From IMG/VR virus record IMGVR_UViG_3300027573_000779, positions 62,001-126,000 of that record: a DNA stretch of 64,000 bases; one strand, written 5' to 3'. Numbering within the stretch: position 1 is the first letter of the stretch; the number at the start of each line of letters is the position of its first letter. This document shows positions 20,110 to 64,000 of this stretch, piece after piece. The notes beneath the pieces were generated by a model. That model was not told the origin of the DNA. It did not search any database and was given only the letters and a program-made list of their open reading frames with translations. The translations under genes and the position numbers were made by a program.

Positions 20110-20643
20110 ATGTCGTTGTATAACATTGCTGATTTCAATTCCAGCGCCCATTACTTTAAAAATGATATTGTGTGGGGTGGGGAAGAAGGTAAGCCAAATT
20201 ATTATTATTGTCTTATCGAGCATGATGCTGGTTCGTATACCTTTTCTACTGAAGTTGAGACTGGGACGCGATGGGGGGGCATTGTTACAATTAATGATGT
20301 AGCTACTCCCCATTTTCTATGGGTGGGTTCTTATGCTACTGCTATTCGTTTGCAACCAAAGGTAAAAGTTATTAAATTTGGTGATTCATACGAGCAAAGA
20401 ACACCAGACGGCATTAACTCTTCATTAATTGAGATTGATTATATTTTTGGCAATCGAGATATAAGGGAAGCTCAGGCCATTCTTCACTTCCTGAAAGAGT
20501 GTGGCGGCAGTACAATGTTTGTTCATACCCCTAGCGCCCCCTACGATTCTCAACGTAAGTTTGTTTGCCGCACATGGGACCACACCTTTGACTTTATTAA
20601 CAATTTTACAATTAGAGCCAAATTTGATGAGGTAGTTGCGTAA
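20110..20643 (+). CDS. Minor tail protein, lambda gpM-like (distal tail)
   Basis: PKVKVIKFGDSYEQRTPDGIN...AILHFL...FVCRTW...AKFDEV. Confidence 0.85.
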   Translation: MSLYNIADFNSSAHYFKNDIVWGGEEGKPNYYYCLIEHDAGSYTFSTEVETGTRWGGIVTINDVATPHFLWVGSYATAIRLQPKVKVIKFGDSYEQRTPDGINSSLIEIDYIFGNRDIREAQAILHFLKECGGSTMFVHTPSAPYDSQRKFVCRTWDHTFDFINNFTIRAKFDEVVA

Positions 20644-21662
20644 TGTTAAAATCTGAAGCAAGAGAAAGTATTAAGAAACTAAATGCGGATTTAATGTCTT
20701 TAAATCCAAGCGCTCTCATTACTATGTTTGAAATTGATGTTACCGATATAGCTTTTGATTTGGGTATTGATGTAGGAGAAAATACGGTTTTTAGGTTTCA
20801 CAATGTTCCTTCTCTTTTTAGTACTGATATTTTTTGGAAAGGAATAAGATATAGTCCCGCGCCCGTCAGAGCAGAAGGATTTGAACTAAACGCTAAAGGT
20901 ATTGTTGCCGCTCCAAAATTAAGTATTTCTTCAAATGAGGAGGGAATTGTTGCTTTGGCGACTTTGAAATCTTACTTAAGAGATTTAAATGATTTAGTGG
21001 GCGCAAGAGTGACCAGAAGAAGGACTTTAGCTAAATATATTGATGATGTTAATTTTATTCCCAATGAATTTGCGGCTGAAAGACCTTATGGATTTGCTCA
21101 GGATTGGAACGCCGAGTTTCCTCCCGATGTTTATTATATTTATCGAAAATCTAATGAAAATAAGTTTTTATTAGAATATGAATTAGGCTCGCCCATTGAC
21201 GTTCAAGGTATTCAGTTACCCAATCGATTAGTTAGCAAACAAAGATGTTTGTGGCAATATAGAGGAAACGGTTGTTTTTGGGAGAATGTAAACAACTATC
21301 TTGAAAATCCAGAAGTCTTTGAAAACTGTGGTGAATCAGTTTTCCCGCAACATGGTGCTCCCCCAGTAGCCAATACTCAAGACCAACTTATTATAGATTC
21401 TCTTGAAGTTGATGAATTGGTTTATAAAGGTCTTTGGAATTCTCTTACGACTTATGTTAAAGGCGATTATGTTTATTTAAAAAAAGATGGTATTAGTTTT
21501 TATTTTGCTTCTAAACAAAACAGTAACTTAAACCACCCTCCACCAAATAAAGATTACTGGATGGAAGACCAGTGCTCAAAAACTGTTAGAGGGTGTAAAC
21601 TACGCCATGGCACTTCTCTTCCTTATGGCGGATTTTATACCGTCCACAAATATGAAGGATAA
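20643..21662 (+). CDS. Minor tail protein, lambda gpL-like
   Basis: DLVGARVTRRRTLAKYID, CLWQYRGNGC, DQCSK..RGCKLR, LPYGGF. Confidence 0.9.
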   Translation: MLKSEARESIKKLNADLMSLNPSALITMFEIDVTDIAFDLGIDVGENTVFRFHNVPSLFSTDIFWKGIRYSPAPVRAEGFELNAKGIVAAPKLSISSNEEGIVALATLKSYLRDLNDLVGARVTRRRTLAKYIDDVNFIPNEFAAERPYGFAQDWNAEFPPDVYYIYRKSNENKFLLEYELGSPIDVQGIQLPNRLVSKQRCLWQYRGNGCFWENVNNYLENPEVFENCGESVFPQHGAPPVANTQDQLIIDSLEVDELVYKGLWNSLTTYVKGDYVYLKKDGISFYFASKQNSNLNHPPPNKDYWMEDQCSKTVRGCKLRHGTSLPYGGFYTVHKYEG

Positions 21663-21663
21663 C

Positions 21664-22407
21664 ATGTTAAGAACCACTTCATTAAACGAAATTAAACAAT
21701 ACGCTATTTTATCTAAACCTGAAGAATGTTGTGGTTTGGTTCTTGAAACTCTTACGGGTGTTAAAATTTGGCCAACTGAAAACTGTTCTGAATATGATAG
21801 AACTAAAACTTTTAAGATTCACCCTTTTGAAGTTATAAAAATTGAAGACCAAGGAAAACTAATTGGAATTTATCACTCCCATAACTCACCTTCTAAAGAA
21901 AGGATATTTTCGGAACTTGATATTCGTAATGCCCAAATACATAAAATAATGTCTATTGTTTATAACACTGTTGAGGAACAGTTTTGTTTTCTTACTGAAA
22001 CCAGCCAATTAAAGTATCTTGGGCGCAAGTTTTTGATTGGTCAAAACGATTGCTTCTCTTTAATTCATGATTATTTTAAAAATGAATTAAAAATAGAACT
22101 AGGAAATTATCCTAGAGATAACAAATGGTTTATTAAAAACCCAACCATCTGGCTAGACAATGTAGAAAAAGGGGGATGTAAAATAGTTTTTAAAGGTAGT
22201 GCTTTGGAAGAATTTGCGCTTAAAAAGTATGATATTTTATTAAGTGATGGACCAATTGAAGGAGTTCCATGCCATGGGGCGCTTTATATAGGCAACGGAA
22301 TGGTTCTTCACCATCCTAGAAACAAACTTTCCACCCTTGAACCTTTACATCAAACTCTAGCAGAAAGAATTCTTTTTGTAATTCGACATAAACATTATGG
22401 TAACTAA
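21664..22407 (+). CDS. Tail assembly protein, lambda gpK-like (JAB plus NlpC/P60)
   Basis: PEECCG, YHSH, DCFSLIHDY, HGALYIGNGMVLHH. Confidence 0.9.
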   Translation: MLRTTSLNEIKQYAILSKPEECCGLVLETLTGVKIWPTENCSEYDRTKTFKIHPFEVIKIEDQGKLIGIYHSHNSPSKERIFSELDIRNAQIHKIMSIVYNTVEEQFCFLTETSQLKYLGRKFLIGQNDCFSLIHDYFKNELKIELGNYPRDNKWFIKNPTIWLDNVEKGGCKIVFKGSALEEFALKKYDILLSDGPIEGVPCHGALYIGNGMVLHHPRNKLSTLEPLHQTLAERILFVIRHKHYGN

Positions 22408-23068
22408 AATTAAACTACATGGACATTTAGGAGACGCTATAGGTAAAGATTGGAAGCTGGCAGTTAAAAGCGTCAAAGAAGCCATTCATGCGATTAATAC
22501 CATAACTAAAGGTAAATTGTATCGCTATTTACTTAAAAAAGATTCTGAAGGGGCGCAATATAAGATTCTTATAAATGAGACCCCGGTTAGTCATTCCGTT
22601 AATAAAATTGATAGTAAAAATTGGGAAGAGGCCAAAAAAACTGAACTTGTAATGGAGATAAAAAATTTAAAAAGTATAGATATTGTTCCTATTATTGAAG
22701 GCGCGGACTCAGATTTTTTGTCTGTTTTATTAGTTATAGTTGGAGTAGTCTTAATTGTCGTTGGTTTATTGACTGGAGGCGTTCTTACGGCTGTTGGTGT
22801 TACTTTAGTAATAGGAGGCATAACAATGCTTCTTTCGCGTCCTCCCGAAATACCTAAACCAGATGATATTCAAAACATAGGTGGGGGAAGGTCTTACTTT
22901 TTTAATGGGGCTGTCAATATAACTACTGAGGGCGGACCTGTGCCTTTAGGTTATGGTGAATGCATTATTGGCAGTCAGGTTTTATCACAAGGTTTTGGAG
23001 TGGGGATTAGAACTGATTCCTTACCAAGATGGGAATATCCAGAAACAGTTCTTTATCCGATAACATAA
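22397..23068 (+). CDS. Tail assembly protein, lambda gpI-like
   Basis: IKLHGHLG, hydrophobic stretch, SYFFNGAVN..EGGPVPLGYG. Confidence 0.88.
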   Translation: MVTKIKLHGHLGDAIGKDWKLAVKSVKEAIHAINTITKGKLYRYLLKKDSEGAQYKILINETPVSHSVNKIDSKNWEEAKKTELVMEIKNLKSIDIVPIIEGADSDFLSVLLVIVGVVLIVVGLLTGGVLTAVGVTLVIGGITMLLSRPPEIPKPDDIQNIGGGRSYFFNGAVNITTEGGPVPLGYGECIIGSQVLSQGFGVGIRTDSLPRWEYPETVLYPIT

Positions 23069-23069
23069 C

Positions 23070-26000
23070 ATGGGCGCTCGAAGTGCATTAGAAGGACTTT
23101 ATTTTACCAAAGAAACATTTGATGATGGGACCAACACCGTTCTTCCTCAAAAGTTTACCACCGTGGTAAGTGTGGAAACTCTTGATTTACTCTCAGAAGG
23201 AGAGATACAGGGGCTAGTAGAAGGAAACTATTCATTTGTCGGAAGTGTCGGCAATGTAGGGTACACAAGTTATACTTTTAATGAATTTCCTGCTCTATAT
23301 GTAAACATGGGTATAGAAGGAACAAGCACTATTCCAACTTACGTTCGTTCAATCTATTTCAACGATATTCCTATTGTGAACGAAGAAGGACAACTTAACT
23401 TTGCTAATATTGACATCGTTCATACTAAAGGGCTTCCAGCCGGAAGTGATTTAACAGATTTAAGTACTCAATATTTAGCAAAACTAATTGGAGAGCAGTT
23501 GCGAGGTTGCGATATTGAAGCTTTTAAAGACGGAAAATTAATTGAAGACGAACAATTAAATATTTATTATGAACCTATTGGTTACCCTGATACTATAAAT
23601 GATAAAAACAATCACGCTACAAAACATGCTAAAGATGAAAAATTAATTCAGCCTTCAAAATATGCAAACCAAGTCTTTATAAAAGGAAAGGATTTGCAAA
23701 AATTAAAACCTTGGCCAATTCAACTTAAAAACTATACCAGTGTCTATCAACCAACTTTTAATGACAATATTAAAATCTACAAAATCCTGAACCGCGAATG
23801 TTTGGGTTGTTTCGTTAATTTAAAAGTTACTACGTTACAGGAAGGAATTGCTCAGGACGACGATGAGGATAGAAAAAAAGAAATTGATGCATTTTTTGGG
23901 AGTGTTGAACTTGACCAAAAATATAGAAAAATTGGCGACATAGTTAATTCAACCGTTTACATAGGTTTAAGTTATAGACCGCTTTTTGAAACGACCAGCA
24001 CCACAATAGACCCAAGAAGCAATTGGTTAGACGCTAAAATTGTCACCCTTACTGGCCGAACCATTAATGGTATTGTGGTTCCAACCAAACTAGACTTTCA
24101 AAACGAATATCCTCAATTTGATGATTTGTTTGATGATGATGATTTTATAGGTTGGGAAGTTTTAGTTTTTAGAATTACCAAAGATTCAGTTAATTCACAT
24201 ATCAGGAATTCAGTTGTAGTTGATAGTATTTCTGAAATGTATGGAACTAGATTCACTTATCCTTATGCAGCTTTAGTTAAATCAAAATTCAGTTCAGAAT
24301 ATTTTCAACAAATTCCCGAACGCGCCTTTAGAGTGCGACTTTTAAAAGTTAAAGTTCCAAGTAATTATAATGTAATTTTAAGAACTTATGATGAATCTGG
24401 CGGACCTTGGGATGGAACTTTTAAAGATGATAAAGAATGGAGTAATAATCCAGCTTGGTGTTATTATGATTTATTAACCAACCCTAGATATGGATTAGGG
24501 AAGTATATTGGTGAAGATTTTATTGATAAATGGACGCTATATGAAATAGCTAAATACTGTGATACTTTAGTTGATGATGGTTATGGGGGCGTTGAACCCA
24601 GATTTACTTTTAATTGGTGGTTTACTACCAGAGAAGAGGCTTACAAGGTTTTAGCTGACTTAACCAGCGTTTTTAGAGCGATGATTTATTATGGGTTTGG
24701 CACCATTTACACAATTCAAGATGCGCCTAAAGAAGCTGTTTATACATTTACCAACGCCAATGTAGAAGAGGGGCAGTTTAATTATAGTTCAAGCAGTAAA
24801 AAAGAAAGATATACTGTTGCGGTTATTCGTTATAATGACCCAAACAATATGTTTAGGCCAGCTTACGAACACATTGAAGACGTTGATGGTATTCGAAAAT
24901 ATGGAATTCGGGAAACTAACGCCACCGCTTTTGGTTGTTCCAGTAGAGGACAGGCTGTAAGACTGGGGAAATGGCTTCTTTTAACTAATATTTTAGAAAC
25001 TGAAATTCTAACTTTTACTGCGGGACACGAAGGTTCAATTTTAAGACCGGGAGATGTTATTTCGGTTTTTGATATTAATCGAAAGGCTCATCGATATGCA
25101 GGCAGAACAGTTTCTATTACTGAATCGGGGGGCAATACAACCGTTGTGTTGGATTCGGCGGTTACGGGTTTAATATCAGGCAGAGCTTATAGGTTTTCTA
25201 TTTTAGTTCCAACTTATTATTACGAGCCTTCTACAGTAACAGATTTAGATTTTTCTAATAGCGCTGAAATTCGCAGAAGTCCAATTCAGACTTTTAACAT
25301 AACTGGCGCAAGTTATAATTCAGCAACCACCAGTATAACCTTTACTGGCACTATTAACACTTCAGATTATCAACTAATTCAAAACATGATTTGGAGTTTG
25401 GATATTACTGACGATGAAACTTATGCGGAAGAAGATAAAAATTTTATAAGAGATAATGTTGATTTTTATAGAATAATTAGAATTTCTGAAAAAGACGACC
25501 ATAAATATGAAGTTGGGGCCGTTCAGTATGTCGAAGATAAATATGACAAAATTGAAGAGGGCATAGGGTTTGAAGTTTATATTCCAGAAGTTCAAAGTAT
25601 TCCTCCTTCTCCTAATGCATCTTTGGTTCTTCAAACGACCGAAGAAAACAAAATTAATAATGTAACTATTACTGCCGGTATTACTGGGGGATACTCGGAT
25701 GCTACCAGCATTGAGGTTTACATGAAAGCCGACAGTAATTTTGATGATAATAGTGTTCCTCACAGAGACTATAAGGTGGGCAAGTTTTTTGGAGTAGGAG
25801 CGGTTAATGTCGCCAAATTAATTCCTCAGGACAATAATAAAGATTATTTTATTCGGGTTTATACCAAAAACGACAAGTATGGCACTTATTCATCCACTCC
25901 TGCTACAGGAAAAATCTCTTATGTTGGTGGATTTGATGTAACTAAAATGAATATTTCAAGCCTTCAAATTCAGCAAGACTATACTGGATTTTCAGGCAAA

Positions 26001-27035
26001 GGGTTGATGACTAGTGAATATAATCCAGTTTTTACTTGGCAAGTAGGTGGTCTTTATGGGCCGGATTTGGTTAATGCTGAAAGAGCTTATTCATGTAGAG
26101 TTACAATTCGTCCTCCTCAGTATGCTTATAGTGGTTCAGTGGCGCGAAGCGGTCTTTATTGGGAACAAACCGGCATTAAAAGCACCAATGGATATTTCTC
26201 ATATCAGTTTCCTTTTGCTCTTAATAGTATAGTGCCGCAAGGTCCCCATAAACATTATGATATTGTAGTTGAAGCCCATGATGTAAATGGAAATACCTCT
26301 GCTGGCGGGAATATTAGCAATCAAAGCGGAACCTTTTATACAGGTTTTCATCAGTTTGATGTTGCTACCTTTTTAAAGCCAATTGATTCAGGCATTCAGC
26401 TTTCAAACAACATTATTACTTATGAATTTTCAGGCCAAGCAACGGGGGTTGATTTAAGTAGTGGTATTAATTTTCAAACCGAACAGTTTTTAGGTCCAAA
26501 TGGAGAAGTTGTTATTAACTTTCTTTCTGGAACACTGTCGCCAGACTTAAGAGGTTGTTTTATTTATGTAAGTTCGGGAGCTTTTCCTAAACGTGAAGCT
26601 GCGGCAGCTTGTTCTACTGGTTCAGTAATTCCGGCGACTGGAAACATTTTTGTTTATCGATACCAGTTTAAAGATTTAGACGTTAATACTCCTACAATTT
26701 ACCATCCTTACGCGGGAAGGATGATAAGAGGATATCCGACTGGTTTCATATCGCTGGCCTTTTATGATGCTTTTGATGAAGTAAAGCTGGAAAGAACCAA
26801 TGACAGGGAAGCTACTATAACGGGTTTATTTATGTCCAATAACGCTATTATTACAAATCGGCCCTATGTGGGCAGTGTAAATATAAGCGAAAAGGCAACT
26901 TTTAAAGACTTTAGAAACTCAAGTCCTTATAATGATATGATGGTTGTAAACTATGGGACACCAGCTAACCCAATTTATAGATTGGTTACTATAGACGCAA
27001 GCGGAAATCATGTGGTGGTAATGAGCAACATTTAA
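23070..27035 (+). CDS. Tail tip / host specificity protein, lambda gpJ-like
   Basis: DLLSEGEIQGLV, WDGTFK..WSNNPAWCYYDLLTNPRYGLG, AFGCSSRGQAVRLGKW, LRPGDVI. Confidence 0.93.
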   Translation: MGARSALEGLYFTKETFDDGTNTVLPQKFTTVVSVETLDLLSEGEIQGLVEGNYSFVGSVGNVGYTSYTFNEFPALYVNMGIEGTSTIPTYVRSIYFNDIPIVNEEGQLNFANIDIVHTKGLPAGSDLTDLSTQYLAKLIGEQLRGCDIEAFKDGKLIEDEQLNIYYEPIGYPDTINDKNNHATKHAKDEKLIQPSKYANQVFIKGKDLQKLKPWPIQLKNYTSVYQPTFNDNIKIYKILNRECLGCFVNLKVTTLQEGIAQDDDEDRKKEIDAFFGSVELDQKYRKIGDIVNSTVYIGLSYRPLFETTSTTIDPRSNWLDAKIVTLTGRTINGIVVPTKLDFQNEYPQFDDLFDDDDFIGWEVLVFRITKDSVNSHIRNSVVVDSISEMYGTRFTYPYAALVKSKFSSEYFQQIPERAFRVRLLKVKVPSNYNVILRTYDESGGPWDGTFKDDKEWSNNPAWCYYDLLTNPRYGLGKYIGEDFIDKWTLYEIAKYCDTLVDDGYGGVEPRFTFNWWFTTREEAYKVLADLTSVFRAMIYYGFGTIYTIQDAPKEAVYTFTNANVEEGQFNYSSSSKKERYTVAVIRYNDPNNMFRPAYEHIEDVDGIRKYGIRETNATAFGCSSRGQAVRLGKWLLLTNILETEILTFTAGHEGSILRPGDVISVFDINRKAHRYAGRTVSITESGGNTTVVLDSAVTGLISGRAYRFSILVPTYYYEPSTVTDLDFSNSAEIRRSPIQTFNITGASYNSATTSITFTGTINTSDYQLIQNMIWSLDITDDETYAEEDKNFIRDNVDFYRIIRISEKDDHKYEVGAVQYVEDKYDKIEEGIGFEVYIPEVQSIPPSPNASLVLQTTEENKINNVTITAGITGGYSDATSIEVYMKADSNFDDNSVPHRDYKVGKFFGVGAVNVAKLIPQDNNKDYFIRVYTKNDKYGTYSSTPATGKISYVGGFDVTKMNISSLQIQQDYTGFSGKGLMTSEYNPVFTWQVGGLYGPDLVNAERAYSCRVTIRPPQYAYSGSVARSGLYWEQTGIKSTNGYFSYQFPFALNSIVPQGPHKHYDIVVEAHDVNGNTSAGGNISNQSGTFYTGFHQFDVATFLKPIDSGIQLSNNIITYEFSGQATGVDLSSGINFQTEQFLGPNGEVVINFLSGTLSPDLRGCFIYVSSGAFPKREAAAACSTGSVIPATGNIFVYRYQFKDLDVNTPTIYHPYAGRMIRGYPTGFISLAFYDAFDEVKLERTNDREATITGLFMSNNAIITNRPYVGSVNISEKATFKDFRNSSPYNDMMVVNYGTPANPIYRLVTIDASGNHVVVMSNI

Positions 27036-53242: not shown

Positions 53243-56200
53243 ATGGCCAATGATGGAGTAAGAGTACCTGTAGTACTAGAGTGGAATCAAGCGATTCAAG
53301 ACTCTATAGCACAGGCACGAAGAATCCCGCCAGTTAACGTTAGAGTTAATACTGGCCGGATTGGAGATGGTTTTAAACACGCGTCTAAAGAGGCCGAACA
53401 GTTTGAACGAGCCTTAGCTAGCGCCCAAACCCGCGTTTTAACCCTCGGGGCGTCTTTCGGCGCTCTGTTCGCAATTCAAAGAGGCTTTAAAGCCTTAATC
53501 CAAACAACCATTGATGTTGAAAAGCAGCTTAAAGACATTAATGTTATTTTGGGAGTAAGCACAAGCAGTCTTAGCACCTTTTCTGAGCAACTGTTTGGTA
53601 TAGCTAAAAATACCGGCCAAAGCTTTGAAACAGTAGCTAAAGCCGCCTTGGAATTTAGCCGCCAAGGTCTTGGAGTTCAAGAAACTTTAAAAAGAACCAA
53701 TGACGCCCTTATTTTAACCCGCCAAACTGGATTAGATGCCGCTGAAGCAACCGACGCTATCACTGCCGCTATTAACAGCTTTAGTCAAGCTGCTCTGACT
53801 TCAAGCGATATTGTTAATAAGTTTGCTAAGGTTGACCAAAACTTTGCAGTTAGTTCCGCTGACTTAGCAGAAGCTATTAAACGGGTGGGTTCTAGCGCTG
53901 AAGAAGCGGGAGTAGGAATTGATGAACTTATTGCTTTAGTTACCTCTGCCCAACAAATAACTCAACGTGGCGGTGCTGTAATTGGTAACGCTTTTAAGAC
54001 TATTTTTACTCGTACAGCCAGACCCCAAGTGCTTAATGACCTTGAACAACTTGGAATTACTGTCAGAAACGCTCAAGGAGATATTCTCCCGGCTGTTCAA
54101 ATCCTCACAAATTTGGCGAACAGTTATGATAATTTAAGTCAGGCCCAACAATCTGCCGCCGCTGAACTTGTAGGGTCTGTTTATCAAATTAACATTTTAA
54201 AAGCTTCTTTAAAAGATTTGGGTAAAGAACACTCGTTTTACTCTAAGGCTCTCAATGACTCTTCAACCGCAACTGACGAAGCTGTTCAACGTAACGAAGC
54301 TTTAAATACAACTCTAGCGGCTTTAATTAATAGAACTAAAGAAAACGTAAGGCAGTTTTCGGCTAATGTGGGACAGGACACTTTTGGCCCTTCAATTCGA
54401 AGAGTTGCTGGTCTTGCTAATGGTTTCTTGGAAAATGCTAATAACATTTTAGGTGCCGATAAAGCTGAAGTGGCTTTTAAAGAAATTGGTTCAGTTCTTG
54501 GAAAAGGACTGGTTAGGGGTTTTGGACAGTTCTTACAAGGTCCGGGTTTGGCGCTGATTGGTGTTGCACTGTTTAAATTTGCCAGTCAGTTCGCAAGGCT
54601 GGCAACAGAAGCTTATAAACTTTTGACTGACCTTAACAAAAGCACTGACCAAAGGGCCGCTATTGAGTCTCGCGTTTTAGGCGTTTTAAGACAAGAGCCT
54701 AATATTTATAGCCAAATACTAGGAAATAGTTTAAGTGTTGTTCAGGCACAAGAAAAGGTTCTTCAAATTATAACGGCACAAAATGCAGCCTTAAACGCCC
54801 AAAAAGCAATAGCTTCACAACTAACATCCACCCTCATTAATACTGGCGCAGTAGGAGTCAATCCTAAGACTAGGGAAGTGGTGACCAATCCAGCTTTAAA
54901 AAAAACACGCTCAGAAGGTAGCATTCCGAACTTTGCGGTAAATATTTTGGACGCTCAAAAGGAAATTGAAGGCGCTTATAAAGCTAAATACATTCCCGGC
55001 CAAGTGCGCCAAGTGGGAGACGCAGTAATTAATAATGCAGAAAGTATTAAAACTAGCGCCGCACACCCCCAAGAAAAAGCTATAGTGCCGCCTCAAGGCA
55101 GCGAAGCGGGACAAAAATACAAAGAAGCTTATCGAACTATTTATGGTAAAAGCCCTTATGGGGATGCAATTACCAAGGGGAGAAACGCTTTTCAGGTTCA
55201 GTGGATGAAGTCAATCGGCGCTAAAAGAGGGTTGGATTTAACTAATCCAGATAATATTTTAGTGCTTGCAAAACAGTTCAGAGAAACCTATGGGTCACAA
55301 CAGGGGCTGTTGCCATTTAATAAAGGAAAGGTGCCAAGTTTTGCCTCTAGTTTAACTTTATCAACTTCAAAAAACTTTGTTAAACTCGCAAAAGAAAGGG
55401 GTGTCAAAATTGTCAGAGAAGACCAGAGGGTTCCCCAAGGTAGTGCTTTTTATATTCGTTCTGGCGCAGAAGGAAAGAAAATAGTTCTTCCAAAAAAGAC
55501 TCCTATTGATGTTCTTGCTCATGAAGTAGGACACGACCTTTCATATGATTACTTAAATATATACTCTCCAAGACTTTTAAAAGAACAATCAGCTAACATC
55601 GAAGCCTTAAAAAGAATTCCCACAGAAAAAGAAAGACAGGGATATCGTGAAACACTAAGTCCTGCAACTAAAACATATAAAATTGGAATATTAAGAGGTA
55701 TTTTGAAGGATTTTGCTCCTAATATAGACGACGAAAGTATTTTTATTAATGAACTCAGAAAGCAGGAAGGCAAACATTCTGATAGATATTCCCCCGTAAT
55801 AAGAGCGCACAGTACCGCTTTGCGTGCTTTGATAAAAGATATAGGACCAAAAAAAGTAAAAGAGATATTGTCACAATTGCCCGAAATAGACAAAACCGAT
55901 TTAAAAAGAAAACCTTACGCTTCGGGGCACGTTCCAAACTTCAACCTCTTCAGTAAGGTTTCTACTGAAGACGAAGCTAACCGAATGGTTAAAGTCTCTT
56001 CGGTTAACGCGCTGAAGCCTTATTTGAAGAAATCAGAAGGTGATGTGCCAAATTTTGCCTCAGGGCGCGTCCCGAACTTTGCTTCTAGTTTATCTCTTTC
56101 AACTAGTAAAAAACTATTAAGGGAAGCTAAAAAAACAGGAATAAAAACACTAAGAACCAACGAACCAATACCTTATTATGATATTCCTTCGAGTTCGGTT

Positions 56201-59200
56201 CGCGCTCCAAAAGGAACTTCTTTTGATGTTATTGCGCACGAACTTGGTCACGGATTTTCTTATCAGGAAAACCCCCTTCTGGAAAGAGTGCGTTCAGATA
56301 TAAAATCAGAAGTGGGCGCTAATACTGAAATTTTAAACAGATTATCAGGAAAAGAAAAGAAATCATTTGCTAAACAAATGCTTAATCCTTTTAAAACCTA
56401 CAAGATAACATCTTTAGTTGATTCTTTAAGAGGACTGGTTCCCCTACCTGAGATGGTCAAAATCATTGGACAACACAGAATAAGAACCAAAGATTTAGGA
56501 AAAAGAGCCGGGGATTTAGGTAATTATAGTGATTTTAGAAAATCTCAATCACAAGTTCTAAGAGACATTGTTAAGACAGTGGGACCACAAAAAGTTAAAG
56601 AGCGCATTTCGAATCTTTCACCGGTTAATAAACAAGACTTAAAGGCGCGTTATTTTGCTTCAGGGCGAGTGCCCAACCTTGCCAAAAGTTCCTACTCTTT
56701 GGTTCATAGTACAACTCCACAGTTGGCTAAGACAATAGAGTCAGAGGGCCTTAAACCTAGAAGAAAAGAGGGCTTTGAAAAGGGGTATTTTTCGCAACAT
56801 GTTACTAACTTTGAGAAACTTGCTGAAGAAGTCAGAGCAAGCGAGTTTCCTGATTTGCCTAGTAGACTAAACTCGGTTTATTTAACTCCAGAAAGTCGAA
56901 AATTTAATAGGTTTGGAACGCATTTTAAAGTTGCCCCAAATAAAGAAAGCTATATTTTCAACTTAAAAAAGATAGATAAAGCTTTTGATTTAGCGGGTCC
57001 TTATGGGACGAGCACTGTTCCAAATACTAAATTACGCGAACTTGCTCGTGAATATTTCCAATCCGGCATTCCTTTAAATAGACAAAATCTAAATAAAGTT
57101 TTAGAAAAAGAGAAAGAAAATACGGGTTATGACTATGGAGACAATCCTTTTTTTGAAATCCTGACGCCGGGACCAGTTTCAGCTAAAAAAATAAAAAGGC
57201 TTAACTCAAAAGGCGCGGTTCCAAACTTTAATATTGATGTTAATGGTATTTTTTCACAACTTCCTGAGCGTGAACGCGTTGTAATAGAAGAACACGCCGA
57301 TGGATTAAAATTGGGCGAAATTGCAAAGAAATATAATATTTCAAGAAATAAAGCAAGCTCTATTTTCAATCGCGGACGTAATAGTTTTATAAAGCAATAC
57401 GGTTTGGCTAAAAAGGGTTTTGGAGAGTTCGCGGCACAAGGTAAAATCCCAAACTTTGCTAAAATCTACAAACTTCGCACTGGATTTCCTGAACATATTT
57501 TAAAACAAATTCAATCATTACATGGTAAACAATTACGAATATTTCCGACTAAGGACCACTTTCCTAAAGAGTTGCGAAACGATATTATAAAGTATGGAGA
57601 AAACAATATTCCCAAGTTTGACCCAAACTTAATAATCGACAGTAATGAAATTATTGAAGTTGAACACGATGATAATATTCGAGGACTTCATGGAACCAAT
57701 ATTGAGAAAATTGTAGTAAAGAAAACAACGCCTTATTTAGACCAACATCTGGCAATTGCCAAAGATGGCGGTATTAAGAGTATTTGGCACACTTTAAATC
57801 CAGACAGGTTTAATAAACCACAAAATCCTAGAAATAGAATTTATAGTCAGGGCCAAGTGCCGAATTTTGCTTCTTCATTTTCTAATATCAGTTTAGCAAA
57901 AGCTCCACATAATTCTACTGCGATAAGAAGACTGGGAATACCAAAAACCGGCAGTTATGCTTCCTATTACTTTGACAGGAATAAACACATAAACATAAGT
58001 TTCATTGAATCTAACCAAAAAGGGGACGCTTTTAGGTTATTTAAAGCTTTGGGGCGCACCGCCCGTAGAATTAAGCGTCCAATTATAAGTGAAACTCTAG
58101 TCAAATCGTCCAAACAACCTGACGAAAACCAAACTAATTGGGAACAACTTTTAGTAAGATATCCTCAATTACGCTACCGGGACTTACCAAACGCTTCAAC
58201 CAATGGGGTTTTTCGGCCAAATCTTCTAGGAAGTGAAGAACGAAGCTTTAACACCTTTGAAGAACTAAAAACTATAGTAAACCAAGTTCCTTCAGATATT
58301 TTCAAAAAAAACCTTAGAACAGGATTCACAAGTGTCGGCAACCTCTCCACTACTTTTAAAAACAAAGGGCAAGCGCCAAATTTTGCTTACATTCCATTCA
58401 TTTCTCCTCTTGTCGGGCGCGTGGTGACTAATTTGGTGCATTCTGGCGAAGGTTTTAGTATGGCGGCTTTAAAACCTGCTTTTAATTTTGCTAAGGAAAA
58501 GGGCATAAAACAAACGATTAAAAATATTATTTTAGACAAACCGGCGCACCAAGGAACTTTTTTTGGTTTTAACGAAGAAGGAAGAGAAGACTTCGGCTTG
58601 TCCGAATTTGGTTTTCGAAAAATGTTTGGTTTGGAACCTAGAATTCCACCAAATCCAGAAGTTAAACTCCGTCAAATTCCGGGCAAGAAAAACACCTATG
58701 CAATAGGTGGAAGAAATCCACTACAAAATTTTGGAGTTAATCTAACAACAAAAACTCCTCAAAATGTTAGATATCGCCCTCAAGACCCAAATACAATTAG
58801 AAGTTTGTTTAGGAGTCCAGATTTCGGAGCTTTTAACCTAGATGCCAACACCAAAAACAGAAAAATTCGCTATTCTGACACTTGGGATTTTGCACTCCAT
58901 GGGAGCGAAAAGTTGAATTTTAAGGAATTAAAAGACGAACTAAAAAGACGTTTTATTAGACAGCCCGAACTTGAATCTATCAAAGATGAATTTAAATTAA
59001 ACGTTCTTCCAAAAGTTTTAAAACAAAACCCTTTAAAAACAATTAAGGATATTAAAGAACTTTTTCCCAAAAACAGACTTAAGAGTGTTTTGAATCCTGC
59101 GAATCTTGTTTTCCAAGGTAATGCGGGAGCCAGTCTTTTTACTAATGAGCCGGTTCATTCTTATGGTAGTTCACAGTTAACAAAACTGTTTAGGAAGCTA

Positions 59201-62200
59201 GTAAACAGTGTCTCGTCACCAGCAACATTCGTAGGCCAAGTTACAAATCCCGATGACAAAAAACTTCTTTTTGATAGTCTTACTGACCTTGCAAATAGCG
59301 ATATAGACCTTCAAAAAACCAAAGCTACGCCTGCCGCCAAATTTTTAGGTACAAAATATAAACAAAACAAATTAAAAGAATCATTTATAACACTTCAGGA
59401 TAGATTGTATAATAGATTCAATTTTAATCCTTCTTCAAAACGTGATTTTAGTAATCGCAAGGACGCTTTTCCAATTGGCAAGCCGGGAATCAACATTTTT
59501 TCGGCTATAGAAAAATATGGTAGAGCCAAAGGTGAAGTGCCAAATTTTGCTTCCTCTTTGCCTTTATCAACCGCCAAAGAATTATTAGCTCTAGCCAAAG
59601 AAAGAAAGATTCGCATTACTAGAGATAAAGAACTTGGAGCTTTTCATAGATTTTCAGAAAGAAGAATTAATCTTCCTAAAGGCGAATCAATTGAAACTTT
59701 CGCGCATGAATTGGGTCACAGTTTATCTACCGATAATTTTTATAAATTTGCTAATGCAAATCGGATAGAAAGAGAAGTAATGGCTAATCAAGAGATTGTC
59801 CAACGACTGGTTGACCCAAAAGAACAAGAAACATTTAAAACAAACACTCTTGAATCTTTTAAATCTTATAAAAGCGGAATAATACTAGAACGGGTTTGGC
59901 CACAATTGCAAATTCCAGAAGAAAAACGCAATCAATATATTGAAATTCAACAAAAAGAATTTAAAAAAACTCAGAGAAGTAAAGGTATAAGTCCAGAGCA
60001 TCGAAGTAGCGCTGCTGTATTACGAAAACTTGTTAAAGATTTTGGGCCAAAAACCATAAAACAACTTATTAGTTCCACTCCCCGCGACGAGAGGGAAGCT
60101 TTAAAACTGCGCTATTCTTTTGGAAAAATCCCTAGTTTTGCCGTAATGAGTCCGCAGGAAAAAGCCTTTAAAGATATCGCTTTAAGACTAAATTCAGAAA
60201 AACATATAGGATATGGCCCACAAAAATATTTTTTACCATTTTTGTCTGATAAAACCGTAAATCCCTATCAATCATTATATTATAGCACCCCATACGAACA
60301 ACAACAAACAAAAAAAGAAGAAGTTGAAAAGAAACTAATAAATTTTATTCCCGAAGGTAAAAATTTCCTAAGACCATATAACAATATTCTACAGCAAGCC
60401 CCCGCTGTTAAAGATGCTTACAGGTTTGTAAGAAACCTTTTTGGTGATTTTGCTGGTCGTGGTTCTGGCGACCCTCTTGAGCGTTCTGCAAACAACTATT
60501 TGAAGATAATGCGTGGTTTACAAAAAACCGGTGTTTTTAAAGAAATAAACAAACTGTCGCCGCAACAATTATTAAGAGGAGGGATAAAATCAGGTAATCT
60601 TTCTCTATACGGTTTTGGGGGAGACCCCCTTCCTGAATCAAAATTCAAAACAAGAGCTTTGGAGTCTGGCAATCGCGACCTTGTGGCTAACGACCCATTA
60701 TATTCGTTTCATCAAAGGTTTGAAAGTAAAAAAGAAGAATTAAAACTAAGAAAACAGTTTAAAGCTTTTACAAGCTCCTTTGTAAACTCTGTTTCTAAAT
60801 TCAGGAACATTCCAAGAATAAAAAATAAACTTGAAGAAATAACTGGCGGTGACCATACAAGACTAGCCCTAACTGCAAAAAAATATATTCCGCCTGAAAT
60901 TTATGAACGTTTAGCTTACCTAAGCAAAACCTTTGTAAATACAAAACGGCAGGCTTATAATCTTGGTGTAGACATTGATTCTCCATTTTACTTTCGTGGA
61001 CAAAGTAGAAGCGAAGCGGCAATTTTAGACAAACTTAAAGAATTTACCTCTTTGGGATTTGCAAGTCAGACAGATAGATTAGGCGTTACTTTAAATAATA
61101 ATCCATTGTTTGCTGCTGCTTTTGGCGTTACTTCCGGCAAAGAGTTTGGAAAACCGGGGTTATTGGGAATTTATAGAAAAAAACAAATCGACAGTAGAGA
61201 ACCAAGAAGGCTAGGAGAAAACATCTCTTCTGGCAGGCTTAGAATAGATGACCTGTTTGGTTTTATTGATTTGGCGGCTCAAAAATTTGTTCCAGCGTCT
61301 TCTCTAAGTAAAGTATATGGTCCAGAACACGCGCCCTCTTCTGAAATTCTGGAGAAAACCAAATCTTTGCTAAGTAAAGAAGATTACGACATAATAAAAT
61401 CTCAAAGTTTACATAAAGATTATAATCCAAACACACAATTAACTCTTACAAGAGGATTAGATGTTCGTAGAGGAAAGAAAATATCAGACTACCGTGGTCC
61501 AAGTCAAACTAACCCCAATCTTGGCGAACTTTCTTTTAAAGAGTTGCTTGACTATCTAAAACACTCAATAGATACTACCCAACCGGGAGTTATTCCAACA
61601 GGTGGGCCAGAAAGTTCTTTTGCAAATGTCAGTTCTGACGCTATTTTAGTTAAAAACCGAAAAACCGCTAAAGAATTAGAAAATAAACCCGTTCAAAAAG
61701 AGGGACAGGCGCATTTCCAAAGGCTGGTCAGTCAATCAGAATTATTCGGATACGACAGACTACAAAACCTTTTTGATAACCCAAATCTTTCAACAGAAAG
61801 AAAAAACAAACTGTTGAGAAGCGGAATCGTTGTTAATCTTCCTGAAATTAGAGGGCAAATTGGATATAGAACGGCAGCACCCGAACGCGAATACCCAATT
61901 TTAACATCAACCCCAAAAACTTCTGGACCTGTAAATATTGGCAGATTATTTGCTGTTTCGCCTTATATATTCAAAAAATCAGGTTATTCAAAAGGAAAGT
62001 TGCCAAACTTTGCAAAAGCTCCGCAATTTTCTCAACTTCAATTAAAAGAAATTTTGGGCGGCTCAACTGAAGCTAGAAAAGCTGTTTTCCAAGACAGTCA
62101 ATTTGTTTTAAAATACGGAAAATCTTCTGGTCACGCTATAAATGAATTTGTTTCAAATAGATTATTTAATGCTTTTGGCGAAAACGTGCCCGAAGCTCAA

Positions 62201-64000
62201 TTAATTGACACTCCTCAAGGTAAAGCCTTTCTGTCTAAATTCATCCAAAGTCAATCTTTTGGAGAACTGTATGATAAAGGAGATATTAATACAAGACAAA
62301 GATTAATTCAAGGAGTTAAACCTTCTTTTGCGGCTCATGCGGCCTTTGCTAATTGGGACGCATTTGGCGATTGGAATCCAGCAGGAGCCAATGTAAGACT
62401 AGATTCAAATAATAGACAGTTTTTTGTGGACTTGGGTGGGGCTTTAGCTTATAGAGGTTTGGGCGCACCTAAACCCAATTTTGGTCCAGAAGTGCCCGAA
62501 CTGCGTTCTCTTATTGATTATGCATCTAATCCTTATGCTAAAGCCGCTTTTAAATTTCAACCAGAAGAGCTAAAATCTAATGTTGCCGATTTTCTAAAAA
62601 GAACTCCGTCAAATTTAAGCGGTTTGTTAGAGTCTTTAAATAGTGAAACCCAAGGGGACCCACATATCACTAAAGCACTAAAACAAATTCCTAATCGTTT
62701 AAATTATCTTAGAAACTTTATTAAATCCAAAGGTTCTATCCCAAATTTCGCGTTCTTTTCAGGAATAGCTTCTGTCGCGCAATCACTTACAGGAGCTAAA
62801 AAACTTCCAAAACAAAACATTCGTGCTAACATTACTCCCGAAGAAATGGAGGCAATCTATTTTAATTACGCTAAAACCATTTATAATCCTCAAAAAGGAA
62901 AAATCCCAGTAGGTTTAAATTATTTTGCGAACAAGGCTTTCAATTCCGCGATGTTTGAACATCAAGGCTCTTATGTTTTTGGTTCTCACGATAACGAGTT
63001 GTTCCTTCCAACTCACTTTGCTCCAAAAAGCTTAAAGGGCGGATTTGCGGCGCAAAAAGCATTAAGTGAATATTCTAATGTAATGTATGCCGTAACTCAG
63101 GAAATGACCCCAATGCTAGAAAGACTTGGGTTCAGTGTGGCTAAATCTGGAGTTAAAGTTCCCTTCAGGGGCGGAACTGCATTAAAAGACTTTTTGGTTT
63201 CTGATAAACTGCGAACCCCAATGTTTCTTACCAATTTCCTTTCTCAAATGAAACAGGGAGCGGGTTCTAAATACGTTAAACAATATTTAACAAGAGAAGA
63301 CCAAGCTAAATTTAGTCATTATTATCCTTATGGTGGGGGAACTCCGGGCGAAGATGAAGCTATTGAATACTTAAGAAACAGAGGAATTACAGCTAATCAG
63401 GGCAAAATTCCTTCGTCTAATGCGTATTTAAAAGCTAAGTTAACGCACGTCCCCAATTTTGCTCTTCTTGACTCTCTTAGGAGTTTAATTGATGTTCAAA
63501 ACAATAAGTTTTTGGGTTCGAAATTACCCAATACACTTGGAGAAATTTACCCTGTTATAAGGGACCAATTTCCTAAAATAGGACCAATCTTAAAGGGAAT
63601 TAACCCTAGATTACTACTAGATGATATTAATGTTGATAGTGGGACATTATATCGAGGTTTTGCTAGAGCTGTGCGCTCAAAAACATATGACGGTCCTTTT
63701 AGAGCATATGACAGTCCTATTAAACCCTCCGAAACCGTCACAGGTGAACTTGACTTTTTATATAACTTTACGCACGCTTTAAATAGAGGCCAACCGTTAA
63801 AATTCCAAAAAGCCTCGCTAGAAGCCCTGTTCCAAATTGGCGCTCAAGCAAAACAAGAAGGGATAACTGATAAAGTAGGTATCAATACAAATAGCGACCC
63901 ATTTTTTAGAAACCTCGGAAACCCGCAACAACATAGAGATTTTGCACGAAACTTTTTAAATTTAGATAAATCAAAACCCAATCAATCCTTTATTCAAAAA
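53243..64000 (+). CDS. Giant tape measure protein fused to an array of enzyme-like modules (3' truncated; absent from ORF track)
   Basis: Hand translation from ATG 53243 shows no stop in 3586 codons. First ~560 aa are TP901-type tape measure (AALEFSRQG, NFAVSSADLAEAIKRVGS, GAVIGNAFKTIFTR); the rest is modules separated by GxVPNFA linkers. Confidence 0.93.
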   Translation, partial: MANDGVRVPVVLEWNQAIQDSIAQARRIPPVNVRVNTGRIGDGFKHASKEAEQFERALASAQTRVLTLGASFGALFAIQRGFKALIQTTIDVEKQLKDINVILGVSTSSLSTFSEQLFGIAKNTGQSFETVAKAALEFSRQGLGVQETLKRTNDALILTRQTGLDAAEATDAITAAINSFSQAALTSSDIVNKFAKVDQNFAVSSADLAEAIKRVGSSAEEAGVGIDELIALVTSAQQITQRGGAVIGNAFKTIFTRTARPQVLNDLEQLGITVRNAQGDILPAVQILTNLANSYDNLSQAQQSAAAELVGSVYQINILKASLKDLGKEHSFYSKALNDSSTATDEAVQRNEALNTTLAALINRTKENVRQFSANVGQDTFGPSIRRVAGLANGFLENANNILGADKAEVAFKEIGSVLGKGLVRGFGQFLQGPGLALIGVALFKFASQFARLATEAYKLLTDLNKSTDQRAAIESRVLGVLRQEPNIYSQILGNSLSVVQAQEKVLQIITAQNAALNAQKAIASQLTSTLINTGAVGVNPKTREVVTNPALKKTRSEGSIPNFAVNILDAQKEIEGAYKAKYIPGQVRQVGDAVINNAESIKTSAAHPQEKAIVPPQGSEAGQKYKEAYRTIYGKSPYGDAITKGRNAFQVQWMKSIGAKRGLDLTNPDNILVLAKQFRETYGSQQGLLPFNKGKVPSFASSLTLSTSKNFVKLAKERGVKIVREDQRVPQGSAFYIRSGAEGKKIVLPKKTPIDVLAHEVGHDLSYDYLNIYSPRLLKEQSANIEALKRIPTEKERQGYRETLSPATKTYKIGILRGILKDFAPNIDDESIFINELRKQEGKHSDRYSPVIRAHSTALRALIKDIGPKKVKEILSQLPEIDKTDLKRKPYASGHVPNFNLFSKVSTEDEANRMVKVSSVNALKPYLKKSEGDVPNFASGRVPNFASSLSLSTSKKLLREAKKTGIKTLRTNEPIPYYDIPSSSVRAPKGTSFDVIAHELGHGFSYQENPLLERVRSDIKSEVGANTEILNRLSGKEKKSFAKQMLNPFKTYKITSLVDSLRGLVPLPEMVKIIGQHRIRTKDLGKRAGDLGNYSDFRKSQSQVLRDIVKTVGPQKVKERISNLSPVNKQDLKARYFASGRVPNLAKSSYSLVHSTTPQLAKTIESEGLKPRRKEGFEKGYFSQHVTNFEKLAEEVRASEFPDLPSRLNSVYLTPESRKFNRFGTHFKVAPNKESYIFNLKKIDKAFDLAGPYGTSTVPNTKLRELAREYFQSGIPLNRQNLNKVLEKEKENTGYDYGDNPFFEILTPGPVSAKKIKRLNSKGAVPNFNIDVNGIFSQLPERERVVIEEHADGLKLGEIAKKYNISRNKASSIFNRGRNSFIKQYGLAKKGFGEFAAQGKIPNFAKIYKLRTGFPEHILKQIQSLHGKQLRIFPTKDHFPKELRNDIIKYGENNIPKFDPNLIIDSNEIIEVEHDDNIRGLHGTNIEKIVVKKTTPYLDQHLAIAKDGGIKSIWHTLNPDRFNKPQNPRNRIYSQGQVPNFASSFSNISLAKAPHNSTAIRRLGIPKTGSYASYYFDRNKHINISFIESNQKGDAFRLFKALGRTARRIKRPIISETLVKSSKQPDENQTNWEQLLVRYPQLRYRDLPNASTNGVFRPNLLGSEERSFNTFEELKTIVNQVPSDIFKKNLRTGFTSVGNLSTTFKNKGQAPNFAYIPFISPLVGRVVTNLVHSGEGFSMAALKPAFNFAKEKGIKQTIKNIILDKPAHQGTFFGFNEEGREDFGLSEFGFRKMFGLEPRIPPNPEVKLRQIPGKKNTYAIGGRNPLQNFGVNLTTKTPQNVRYRPQDPNTIRSLFRSPDFGAFNLDANTKNRKIRYSDTWDFALHGSEKLNFKELKDELKRRFIRQPELESIKDEFKLNVLPKVLKQNPLKTIKDIKELFPKNRLKSVLNPANLVFQGNAGASLFTNEPVHSYGSSQLTKLFRKLVNSVSSPATFVGQVTNPDDKKLLFDSLTDLANSDIDLQKTKATPAAKFLGTKYKQNKLKESFITLQDRLYNRFNFNPSSKRDFSNRKDAFPIGKPGINIFSAIEKYGRAKGEVPNFASSLPLSTAKELLALAKERKIRITRDKELGAFHRFSERRINLPKGESIETFAHELGHSLSTDNFYKFANANRIEREVMANQEIVQRLVDPKEQETFKTNTLESFKSYKSGIILERVWPQLQIPEEKRNQYIEIQQKEFKKTQRSKGISPEHRSSAAVLRKLVKDFGPKTIKQLISSTPRDEREALKLRYSFGKIPSFAVMSPQEKAFKDIALRLNSEKHIGYGPQKYFLPFLSDKTVNPYQSLYYSTPYEQQQTKKEEVEKKLINFIPEGKNFLRPYNNILQQAPAVKDAYRFVRNLFGDFAGRGSGDPLERSANNYLKIMRGLQKTGVFKEINKLSPQQLLRGGIKSGNLSLYGFGGDPLPESKFKTRALESGNRDLVANDPLYSFHQRFESKKEELKLRKQFKAFTSSFVNSVSKFRNIPRIKNKLEEITGGDHTRLALTAKKYIPPEIYERLAYLSKTFVNTKRQAYNLGVDIDSPFYFRGQSRSEAAILDKLKEFTSLGFASQTDRLGVTLNNNPLFAAAFGVTSGKEFGKPGLLGIYRKKQIDSREPRRLGENISSGRLRIDDLFGFIDLAAQKFVPASSLSKVYGPEHAPSSEILEKTKSLLSKEDYDIIKSQSLHKDYNPNTQLTLTRGLDVRRGKKISDYRGPSQTNPNLGELSFKELLDYLKHSIDTTQPGVIPTGGPESSFANVSSDAILVKNRKTAKELENKPVQKEGQAHFQRLVSQSELFGYDRLQNLFDNPNLSTERKNKLLRSGIVVNLPEIRGQIGYRTAAPEREYPILTSTPKTSGPVNIGRLFAVSPYIFKKSGYSKGKLPNFAKAPQFSQLQLKEILGGSTEARKAVFQDSQFVLKYGKSSGHAINEFVSNRLFNAFGENVPEAQLIDTPQGKAFLSKFIQSQSFGELYDKGDINTRQRLIQGVKPSFAAHAAFANWDAFGDWNPAGANVRLDSNNRQFFVDLGGALAYRGLGAPKPNFGPEVPELRSLIDYASNPYAKAAFKFQPEELKSNVADFLKRTPSNLSGLLESLNSETQGDPHITKALKQIPNRLNYLRNFIKSKGSIPNFAFFSGIASVAQSLTGAKKLPKQNIRANITPEEMEAIYFNYAKTIYNPQKGKIPVGLNYFANKAFNSAMFEHQGSYVFGSHDNELFLPTHFAPKSLKGGFAAQKALSEYSNVMYAVTQEMTPMLERLGFSVAKSGVKVPFRGGTALKDFLVSDKLRTPMFLTNFLSQMKQGAGSKYVKQYLTREDQAKFSHYYPYGGGTPGEDEAIEYLRNRGITANQGKIPSSNAYLKAKLTHVPNFALLDSLRSLIDVQNNKFLGSKLPNTLGEIYPVIRDQFPKIGPILKGINPRLLLDDINVDSGTLYRGFARAVRSKTYDGPFRAYDSPIKPSETVTGELDFLYNFTHALNRGQPLKFQKASLEALFQIGAQAKQEGITDKVGINTNSDPFFRNLGNPQQHRDFARNFLNLDKSKPNQSFIQK
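54917..63463 (+). repeat. Dispersed in-frame linker repeat G-x-[VILA]-P-[NS]-[FL]-[AN]
   Basis: Copies start at 54917, 55325, 55925, 56039, 56063, 56663, 57212, 57440, 57851, 58367, 59531, 60122, 61994, 62732 and 63443 (THVPNFA), with a degenerate copy at 63401. Confidence 0.92.

Follow-up and report, generated by a model that had tools for sequence, protein, structure and literature searches.

The window considered here is a stretch of 64,000 nucleotides (bases 62001-126000) of the IMG/VR virus record IMGVR_UViG_3300027573_000779, a genome of 208,933 bp that CheckV rates as 100% complete, and the subject is a module resembling ADP-ribosyltransferases (ARTs) that lies inside a giant open reading frame (ORF) of this genome. 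The source is an uncultured, siphovirus-like phage of 209 kb from groundwater/sediment. Coordinates refer to the window unless genome positions are indicated, and the principal features are the following:

53243..64000, + strand: giant ORF of 5,468 codons (5,468 aa), starting with the ATG at 53243, stop-free over 16.4 kb and ending with a TAA at genome position 131649 (= window 69649)
53603..54163, + strand: PhageMin_Tail domain (PF10145), aa 122-308, Pfam E 1.8e-26, above cut-off
56669..57217, + strand: very probable ART-fold module of the DUF2441/BC2332 type, aa 1144-1326, 183 aa, assigned by sequence and fold searches

A scan for stop-free stretches gives a single frame that stays open from 53240 up to the last base of the window, in which the ORF beginning with the ATG at 53243 continues past the edge, and it is for this reason that a plain ORF listing showed no forward ORF at the module; in both of the remaining forward frames, stops are abundant there. 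In the N-terminal part, eleven PHROG tape-measure families match with E<1e-15, and a tape-measure PHROG is also matched near the C-terminus. The PF10145 match is the sole one in the 208,933-bp genome. By these similarities, the giant ORF is the tape-measure protein (TMP) of the phage, with an internal array of cargo modules, and the genome contains no second TMP-like gene. The module is thus one segment of this 5,468-aa protein, and its reading as a free-standing gene was rejected. The TMP contains one hydrophobic segment (aa 4057-4079), and an identical 5,468-aa protein is found in a public protein collection. With 5,468 aa it is exceptionally long for a TMP; at ~0.15 nm per residue, and if all residues were measuring, the tail would reach ~0.8 micrometre. 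The DNA of the module region recurs without any difference in contigs of three independent public runs (groundwater and freshwater-sediment metagenomes, two of which may represent the source sample), and the segment is therefore not an assembly artefact.

The first-pass annotation, made from the sequence alone, had placed a DUF2441-like and ART-like module at 56684-57211, on the basis of the strings LVHSTT...IESEGLKP, FEKLAEEVRASEFPDLPSRLNSVY (F-E-K-L-A-E-E-V-R-A-S-E-F-P-D-L-P-S-R-L-N-S-V-Y), AREYF and FEILTPGPV. These strings are indeed present in this order and in one frame, which is open at window position 55901, at about 56696-57181 and thus inside the proposed bounds, and the bounds themselves come close to those of the natural module at 56669-57217, which is flanked on both sides by a boundary motif described below. 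The family assignment has been borne out by several independent searches. A tblastn search against the PLSDB plasmids (7.3 Gb, E<=10) gave exactly two matches, both annotated as Bacillus DUF2441 proteins (best E 1e-5, 89% coverage), and in a pairwise BLASTP comparison with the better of the two, the module is 30% identical over 154 aa (E 1e-13). With hhalign, the module aligns to an alignment of 14 DUF2441 proteins with a probability of 96.9% (E 1.4e-10), and a profile built from the module together with family members matches PDB 2AUA, the structure of BC2332, with E 5e-7, as compared to E 0.07 with the module alone. In Pfam, DUF2441 is the sole family that matches the module (19.7 bits, E 9e-4, profile positions 56-114/141), and PF10386.17 is among the entries of a newer, precomputed annotation of the entire protein. 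PHROG 5663, a family whose function is not known, matches module residues 48-173 (E 3.2e-8). The ART-like character then holds by homology, as DUF2441 itself is listed in Pfam's ART clan (PMC7955679), and BC2332-like proteins (2AUA) form SCOP family d.166.1.6 of the ADP-ribosylation superfamily (PMC3000352). Active-site templates of 2AUA matched diphtheria toxin, exotoxin A and cholix toxin according to its structural-genomics centre (PMC3024214). Taken with the fold evidence below, the identity of the domain as a DUF2441/BC2332-type ART can be regarded with high confidence.

Relatives of the module are rare. Word-indexed searches, carried out with the module alone and with the module as a region of the whole protein, gave no other relative; scans of viral, genome and metagenome contig collections yielded nothing beyond the source contig Ga0208454_1000014; PADLOC and NCBIfam gave nothing for the module; and in the INPHARED phage collection, tblastn matched neither the module nor a Bacillus DUF2441 protein. 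The retrieved Bacillus DUF2441 genes all lie in prophages or phage-plasmids, between tail/baseplate genes and an XhlA/holin-endolysin cassette (L010:3986-4522, L012:5001-5513, L013:5001-5507). The slot between tail genes and lysis cassette is a classic place for accessory genes, which suggests that the whole DUF2441 family has a phage accessory function.

The residues that are most informative for the classification as an ART are located as follows:

56705..56707, + strand: codon cat of His13 in L-V-H-S-T, aligned with the His of F-Y-H-V-S in DUF2441, on model strand 10-14; predicted strand-1 contact to NAD
56879..56881, + strand: codon tat of Tyr71 in P-S-R-L-N-S-V-Y-L-T, invariant in both alignments, on model strand 70-73
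57155..57157, + strand: codon gaa of Glu163 in F-F-E-I-L, candidate catalytic Glu, invariant in both alignments, on model strand 162-166

Two family alignments that include the module were used, both of narrow composition (a Bacillus prophage subfamily and four viral contigs). In these, the columns E49, E53, R56, F60, P64, S65, R66, S69, Y71, E124, A126, Y129, E163, L165, G168, V170 and K173 are invariant, and so are all columns of the signature E-x3-E-x2-R-x3-F-P-x2-P-S-R-x2-S-x-Y + A-x2-Y + E-x-L-x2-G-x-V, the block of which also aligns to 2AUA. The shorter string ExxRxxxFPxxPSR, which the first-pass annotation gave as the DUF2441 signature, is part of this block. Likewise, the designation as a His-type enzyme agrees with the family alignment, since the strand-1 His, the Tyr of S-x-Y and the C-terminal Glu are all kept. 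His13, Tyr71 and Glu163 lie on the predicted strands 1, 2 and 5 of the model, which we take to be the H-Y-E positions of diphtheria-toxin/PARP-type enzymes. They are thus candidates for the ART triad, as judged from the alignment and the model rather than from a superposition of side chains.

His-type ARTs open with the pattern h-h-H-[GS]-[ST]-x(n)-I-x3-G-[LI]-x-P, and it was this opening that had led to the proposal of an ART fold of the H-class/KptA type. The H-class part of the proposal stands, whereas the KptA part does not. KptA/Tpt1 proteins share with the module the N-terminal pattern h-h-H-[GS]-T ... I ... G-L-x-P and the fold superfamily, but the Arg that precedes the His in their R-H-R-R tetrad is replaced by Val in the module, and the KptA/Tpt1 family PF01885 has no match with E<=10 in the whole genome, while controls were matched in 4 genomes.

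Structure prediction, although weaker as evidence, points in the same direction. A single-sequence AF2 model of the module was all-helical (pLDDT 45); with an alignment of 13 sequences, AF2 gave a model with a mean pLDDT of 46.8, a pTM of 0.43, a beta-alpha-beta order and strands at 10-14, 70-73, 94-99, 106-109, 162-166 and 172-178. Foldseek ranks 2AUA first for the latter (probability 1.00, E 1.6e-3, TM 0.40), which agrees with the proposed ART fold, with the restriction that the mean pLDDT of the query model is only 46.8. Among the AFDB clusters matched by the model are DUF2441, ART-PolyVal-like and RES entries; a single cluster carries the name ART-PolyVal (probability 0.21), and the corresponding family PF18760 has no match with E<=10 in the whole genome, so that this assignment was rejected. 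In a Foldseek-independent VIA comparison with 48,161 PDB chains, 2AUA again takes rank 1 (Z 5.9), and ranks 1-11 are all ART folds with Z 2.8-5.9; ranks 2-11 comprise DarT (four chains), PltA, CC0527, pertussis toxin, MbcT, diphtheria toxin and the Rhs toxin TreX, and many more ARTs follow lower in the list, with Tpt1 at rank 50 (Z 2.1). A second look with VIA placed 2AUA at Z 6.4, followed only by the ART-fold proteins PltA, MbcT and RES, again with a low-confidence model. What the model contributes to the argument for a predicted ART fold is the near-exclusive ART make-up of the top ranks, not any single score.

Could the resemblance be due to chance, in a segment that does not have the ART fold? 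The sub-threshold Pfam score, the low-confidence AF2 models and the lack of single-sequence homologues among 1.84 billion clusters would be in line with such a view. It is nevertheless highly improbable, as tblastn, BLASTP, profile, hhalign, PHROG and VIA comparisons all agree, as the only tblastn matches with E<=10 are DUF2441 proteins, and as 11/11 top chains of 48,161 have ART folds.

The list of structural neighbours also bears on the chemistry. The same fold might serve an NAD+-consuming hydrolase or phosphorylase of the RES/MbcT kind, or a protein that binds or degrades an NAD-derived immune signal; MbcT (Z 3.0) and RES toxins (Z 2.2-2.4) are among the neighbours, and the invariant Arg, Ser and Glu of the module are of the residue types that are conserved in RES domains. 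Phage counter-defence by way of NAD-derived signals is, moreover, a known theme (PMC9503650). Yet the best neighbours after 2AUA are the transferases DarT, PltA and pertussis toxin, the H...Y...E arrangement is a transferase pattern, and a bulk depletion of NAD+ on entry would hurt the infection by the phage itself, so that such other chemistry appears to be a minor possibility.

The position of the module within the TMP is defined by a short peptide motif, G-x-[VIL]-P-[NS]-F-[AN], that occurs in 16 copies in the TMP ORF and cuts its interior into ~15 modules. Every recognisable module is delimited by this motif, and the ART-like module coincides exactly with the interval aa 1144-1326 between two copies:

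56654..56683, + strand: upstream boundary motif of the ART-like module, F-A-S-G-R-V-P-N-L-A, one of 16 copies
57203..57232, + strand: downstream boundary motif of the ART-like module, N-S-K-G-A-V-P-N-F-N, one of 16 copies

The consensus is [SK]-x-G-x-[VIL]-P-N-F-[AN], with two of the 16 copies being P-S-F variants. There are 14 strict copies, as opposed to 0.54 expected (maximum of 4 in 2,000 shuffles). The copies are at aa 562, 698, 898, 936, 944, 1144, 1327, 1403, 1540, 2100, 2297, 2921, 3167, 3404, 3724 and 3802 and span the region from window 54908-64000 on to genome position 126650; sites within the window include 54923, 55331, 55931, 56045, 56069, 56669, 57218, 57446, 57857, 59537, 60128, 62000, 62738 and 63449. 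Because synonymous codons vary freely among the copies, selection acts on the motif peptide and not on the DNA, and a DNA-level recombination linker was rejected on the same grounds. The motif could be a cleavage site or a docking site.

Two side observations concern the motif. In one low-coverage run (X3), contigs end at or near boundary-motif sites (window 56069, 57216, 57336), which k-mer repeats or low depth may explain. Outside the window, the 12-bp tandem repeat GGTCCCRAACTT forms arrays at genome positions 178746-179168, 181922-182209, 184818-185075 and 193961-194266; a + frame of these arrays reads (V-P-N-L)n and echoes the TMP motif, which may be coincidence, while on the minus strand they read (D-Q-V-W / D-Q-V-R)n with ATG starts and probably encode small repeat proteins.

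A comparison with the TMPs of three related viral contigs separates scaffold from cargo. These TMPs, with lengths of 2,111 aa, 3,857 aa and ~3,560 aa as opposed to 5,468 aa here, resemble the giant ORF at the two ends only, over ~650 aa at the N-terminus (42-48% identity) and ~470 aa at the C-terminus (27-30%), and no ART-like module, no recognised Pfam cargo domain and no HExxH was found in any of the three. The ends of the TMP are Ala-rich and poor in aromatics, while the inserted modules are rich in K/R and aromatic residues. The TMP ends are thus a conserved scaffold, and the interior is a variable cargo array. In two of the three relatives, G-[FV]-[IV]-P-N-[FL] occurs four or five times, with the first copy at the homologous site (~aa 570), and the shortest relative has a degenerate G-F-V-P-A-G-A there. 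As relatives carry the motif with the first copy in a homologous position, the motif is ancestral to this TMP clade, and its copy number rises with insert size across the clade. In one of the related contigs, the TMP is distributed over two ORFs that overlap but differ in frame (L005:3033-4532, L005:4502-13699), which a programmed frameshift or a sequencing error could explain.

The modules that surround the ART-like module in the array are the following:

55331..55930, + strand: HExxH zincin-like peptidase module 1, aa 698-897, HExxH at aa 761, motif at both ends
56069..56668, + strand: HExxH zincin-like peptidase module 2, aa 944-1143, directly upstream of the ART-like module, HELGH at aa 1000
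57218..57445, + strand: sigma-70 region-4-like helix-turn-helix (HTH) module, aa 1327-1402, 76 aa, directly downstream of the ART-like module, Sigma70_r4 E 3.7e-5
59537..60127, + strand: HExxH zincin-like peptidase module 3, aa 2100-2296, HExxH at aa 2156, PHROG 87 metallo-protease E 1.3e-9
60128-61999, + strand: module of 624 aa, aa 2297-2920, no family match, low-score ESM-Atlas lead

The three HExxH modules have ~200 aa each, are paralogous and mutually ~36% identical (modules 2 and 3 with E 2e-26), and each opens with V-P-[NS]-F-A-S-S-L and runs to the next motif; Pfam peptidase matches are weak only (Reprolysin/M13/M4 on module 2). The sigma-type HTH module is just under the cut-off with Sigma70_r4 and is matched by TIGR02937 (E 1.2e-7) and by PHROG sigma-factor families (E 1e-6). 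It may act as a decoy or serve to target promoters. No recognisable family was found for the other array modules, and Pfam LPD domains were not detected. ESM-Atlas searches with two of the family-less modules gave weak leads (scores <=0.81); the nearest named clusters of the module at aa 2297-2920 are the large polyvalent protein-associated LPD23/38/39 and ART-PolyVal (0.6-0.69).

This array also permits an assessment of whether the ART-like module is an inert remnant of an ART fold that is kept as a structural spacer, as a binding module or as an element that contributes to tape-measure length. The module is embedded in a structural protein, many ART-fold families are pseudo-enzymes, and the lack of close relatives anywhere in a search of 1.84 billion representatives could mean relaxed constraint. 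On the other hand, all family-invariant residues, including Y71 and E163, are kept at only ~25% overall identity, with His13 aligned, as would be expected if the active site is under purifying selection; the structure predicted for the module is globular and rich in beta-strands, unlike the helical TMP scaffold; and the adjoining modules are of enzyme or regulator types. An inert remnant is therefore unlikely.

What could an ART in a tape measure be good for? The TMP is believed to leave the tail and to form a conduit for the DNA (PMC7824862). If so, the cargo, including the ART-like module, would reach the host at the very start of infection. We therefore favor a model in which the TMP anchors a train of effector modules in the manner of the so-called polyvalent proteins, with the ART-like module being an NAD+-using modifier of a host macromolecule, and we assign to this model a probability of roughly 0.55. 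The TMP would exit the tail tube into the host envelope or the cytoplasm ahead of the DNA; the cargo modules would then be freed, possibly by the embedded peptidases that may cut at or near the boundary motif; and the ART-like module would, within moments of the onset of infection, transfer ADP-ribose from NAD+ to a macromolecule of the host, which might be a nucleic acid or a protein (e.g. a defence factor or RNA polymerase). A nucleic-acid target is conceivable, since the DNA ADP-ribosyltransferase DarT is the closest structural neighbour after 2AUA. The idea of the first-pass annotation that the module is an NAD-dependent modifier of host protein or nucleic acid is a reasonable one.

The individual steps differ in their likelihood. 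For NAD+-dependent transfer, the odds are about even. The same may be said of the delivery into the host cell, for which the anchoring in a TMP speaks. A proteolytic cleavage at the motif is possible, though on balance doubtful. Still more tentative is the wider proposal that the TMP of this clade is generally a modular effector train, in which the motif acts as a programmed processing or docking signal that is cut by embedded zincins or by a conserved phage or host protease, and in which at least a dozen cargo domains that fold independently, including the DUF2441-type ART and a sigma-region-4 decoy, are released at DNA ejection.

The module could also be an active enzyme that is not injected, if the array is cleaved off during tail assembly and the ART-like module works late in the producing cell, or if the array is housed in another part of the virion. 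Processing during assembly is known for lambda gpH and for other TMPs, globular domains are hard to fit into the tail lumen, and the presence of the motif in relatives that have no peptidase modules would fit a separate assembly protease. An internal TMP segment would, however, be an odd route to a late cytoplasmic activity, and the precedent of the polyvalent proteins favors delivery, so that an enzyme that stays behind appears improbable.

Several observations weigh against the proposed effector train with an ART that modifies the host. The DUF2441 Pfam score of 19.7 bits is below the gathering threshold of 25 bits, and for this reason the module is, as far as its sequence tells, a divergent relative or new subfamily of DUF2441 and not a typical member. 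A phmmer search with the module against 1.84 billion cluster representatives returned only its own protein and one low-complexity match; as no other relative came to light, family conservation was judged from a single, narrow subfamily of Bacillus proteins. The confidence of both AF2 models is low, and every structural Z is below 7, a range that the tool warns can be non-specific. In the literature searched, no demonstrated activity was found for any DUF2441 protein. Folded domains of 20 kDa have no obvious fit in the lumen of a tail tube. The related TMPs have the boundary motif but no HExxH, and the embedded peptidases therefore cannot be the general explanation of the motif, which weakens their candidacy as its universal protease. 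Finally, the TMP gene lies 26 kb downstream of genes that resemble those for the lambda tail tip (L, K and J), as the last gene of its own strand block.

The gene order of the region is indeed atypical. A placement of the TMP gene directly upstream of the tail-tip genes within a tail block was not found; the lambda-like tail-tip genes are at 20631-27032 and encode a minor tail protein L-like protein (phrog_18), a K-like protein (phrog_30) and a J-like central fibre protein (phrog_31, E 1e-146). Between 31.7 and 53.2 kb of the window lie nine further large ORFs, none of which is matched by any PHROG. The genes downstream of the TMP gene are convergent to it, and the terminase is among them:

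genome 138564-140441 (L003:6915-8792), - strand: terminase large subunit, phrog_2, E 2e-18, just past the TMP gene

Beside the terminase, an ERCC4-type nuclease is encoded in the same convergent arrangement just downstream of the TMP gene.

How does the proposed TMP-anchored effector train relate to known systems? In sequence, the closest ones are the DUF2441 proteins themselves. The homology with DUF2441 and 2AUA, the best structural match, spans the domain and includes the strand-1 His, the E...Y block, the A-R-x-Y helix and the C-terminal [FW]-E-x-L strand, and the family is likewise associated with phages, as its Bacillus members reside in prophages. The module differs in its low identity of only 22-28%, in its sub-threshold Pfam score and in its context, as the members found are free-standing proteins of 140-180 aa (224 aa in the case of BC2332), whereas the module is internal to a virion protein of 5,468 aa.

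With respect to the overall architecture, the polyvalent proteins described by Iyer et al. 2017 (PMC5512222) from phages and from conjugative elements are the nearest counterpart, being giant polypeptides in which unrelated effector-type domains, interspersed zincin HExxH domains, an ART-superfamily domain and an HTH are combined with a virion-structural anchor. Here, three HExxH modules, an ART-fold module and a sigma region-4 HTH are found in one ORF. Among the domains of virion-borne polyvalent proteins that modify macromolecules, ARTs are the most frequent, and the zincin peptidases have a predicted role in the processing of such polyproteins, be it before or after injection (PMC5512222; PMC9503650). 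There are three differences: the anchor here is a TMP and not a head protein, the term "tape measure" being absent from PMC5512222; the ART is of the DUF2441 type and not an ART-PolyVal; and the modules are delimited by a short conserved peptide motif, which is not described in the passages of that paper that were consulted.

The Alt protein of phage T4 and the MuF-ART fusions are similar in that an ART is carried in the virion, is delivered together with the DNA and modifies host proteins early (PMC9503650; MuF-VIP2 in PMC7302621), with delivery being presumed for the module described here. Those enzymes are, however, of the R-S-E type and packaged in the head, whereas the module is of the His type and part of the tape measure of the tail. 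That a TMP can contain a non-structural, functional segment that acts during infection has a precedent in the TMP of mycobacteriophage TM4 (PMC1796659). The known inserts of this kind are directed at the cell wall, being peptidoglycan hydrolase motifs, in contrast to the intracellular types (ART, sigma-like HTH) found here, and the array makes up ~60% of the protein.

The DUF2441 family itself is known but uncharacterised, and what is new is a DUF2441-type ART in a motif-segmented, peptidase-bearing TMP. For DUF2441/BC2332, an ART-like structure has been available since 2005 while the function is not known, and a virion-embedded member now gives the family a testable role as an early phage effector. 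At the same time, the idea of polyvalent proteins is extended from head-anchored to tape-measure-anchored delivery. If the motif is indeed a processing code, it could be used to search further giant tail proteins for cargo domains. And if the effector train exists as proposed, the module would be the first ART of the DUF2441 type to which a biological role can be assigned, and the TMP would be a tail-borne counterpart of the head-packaged polyvalent proteins, with a cleavage code of its own.

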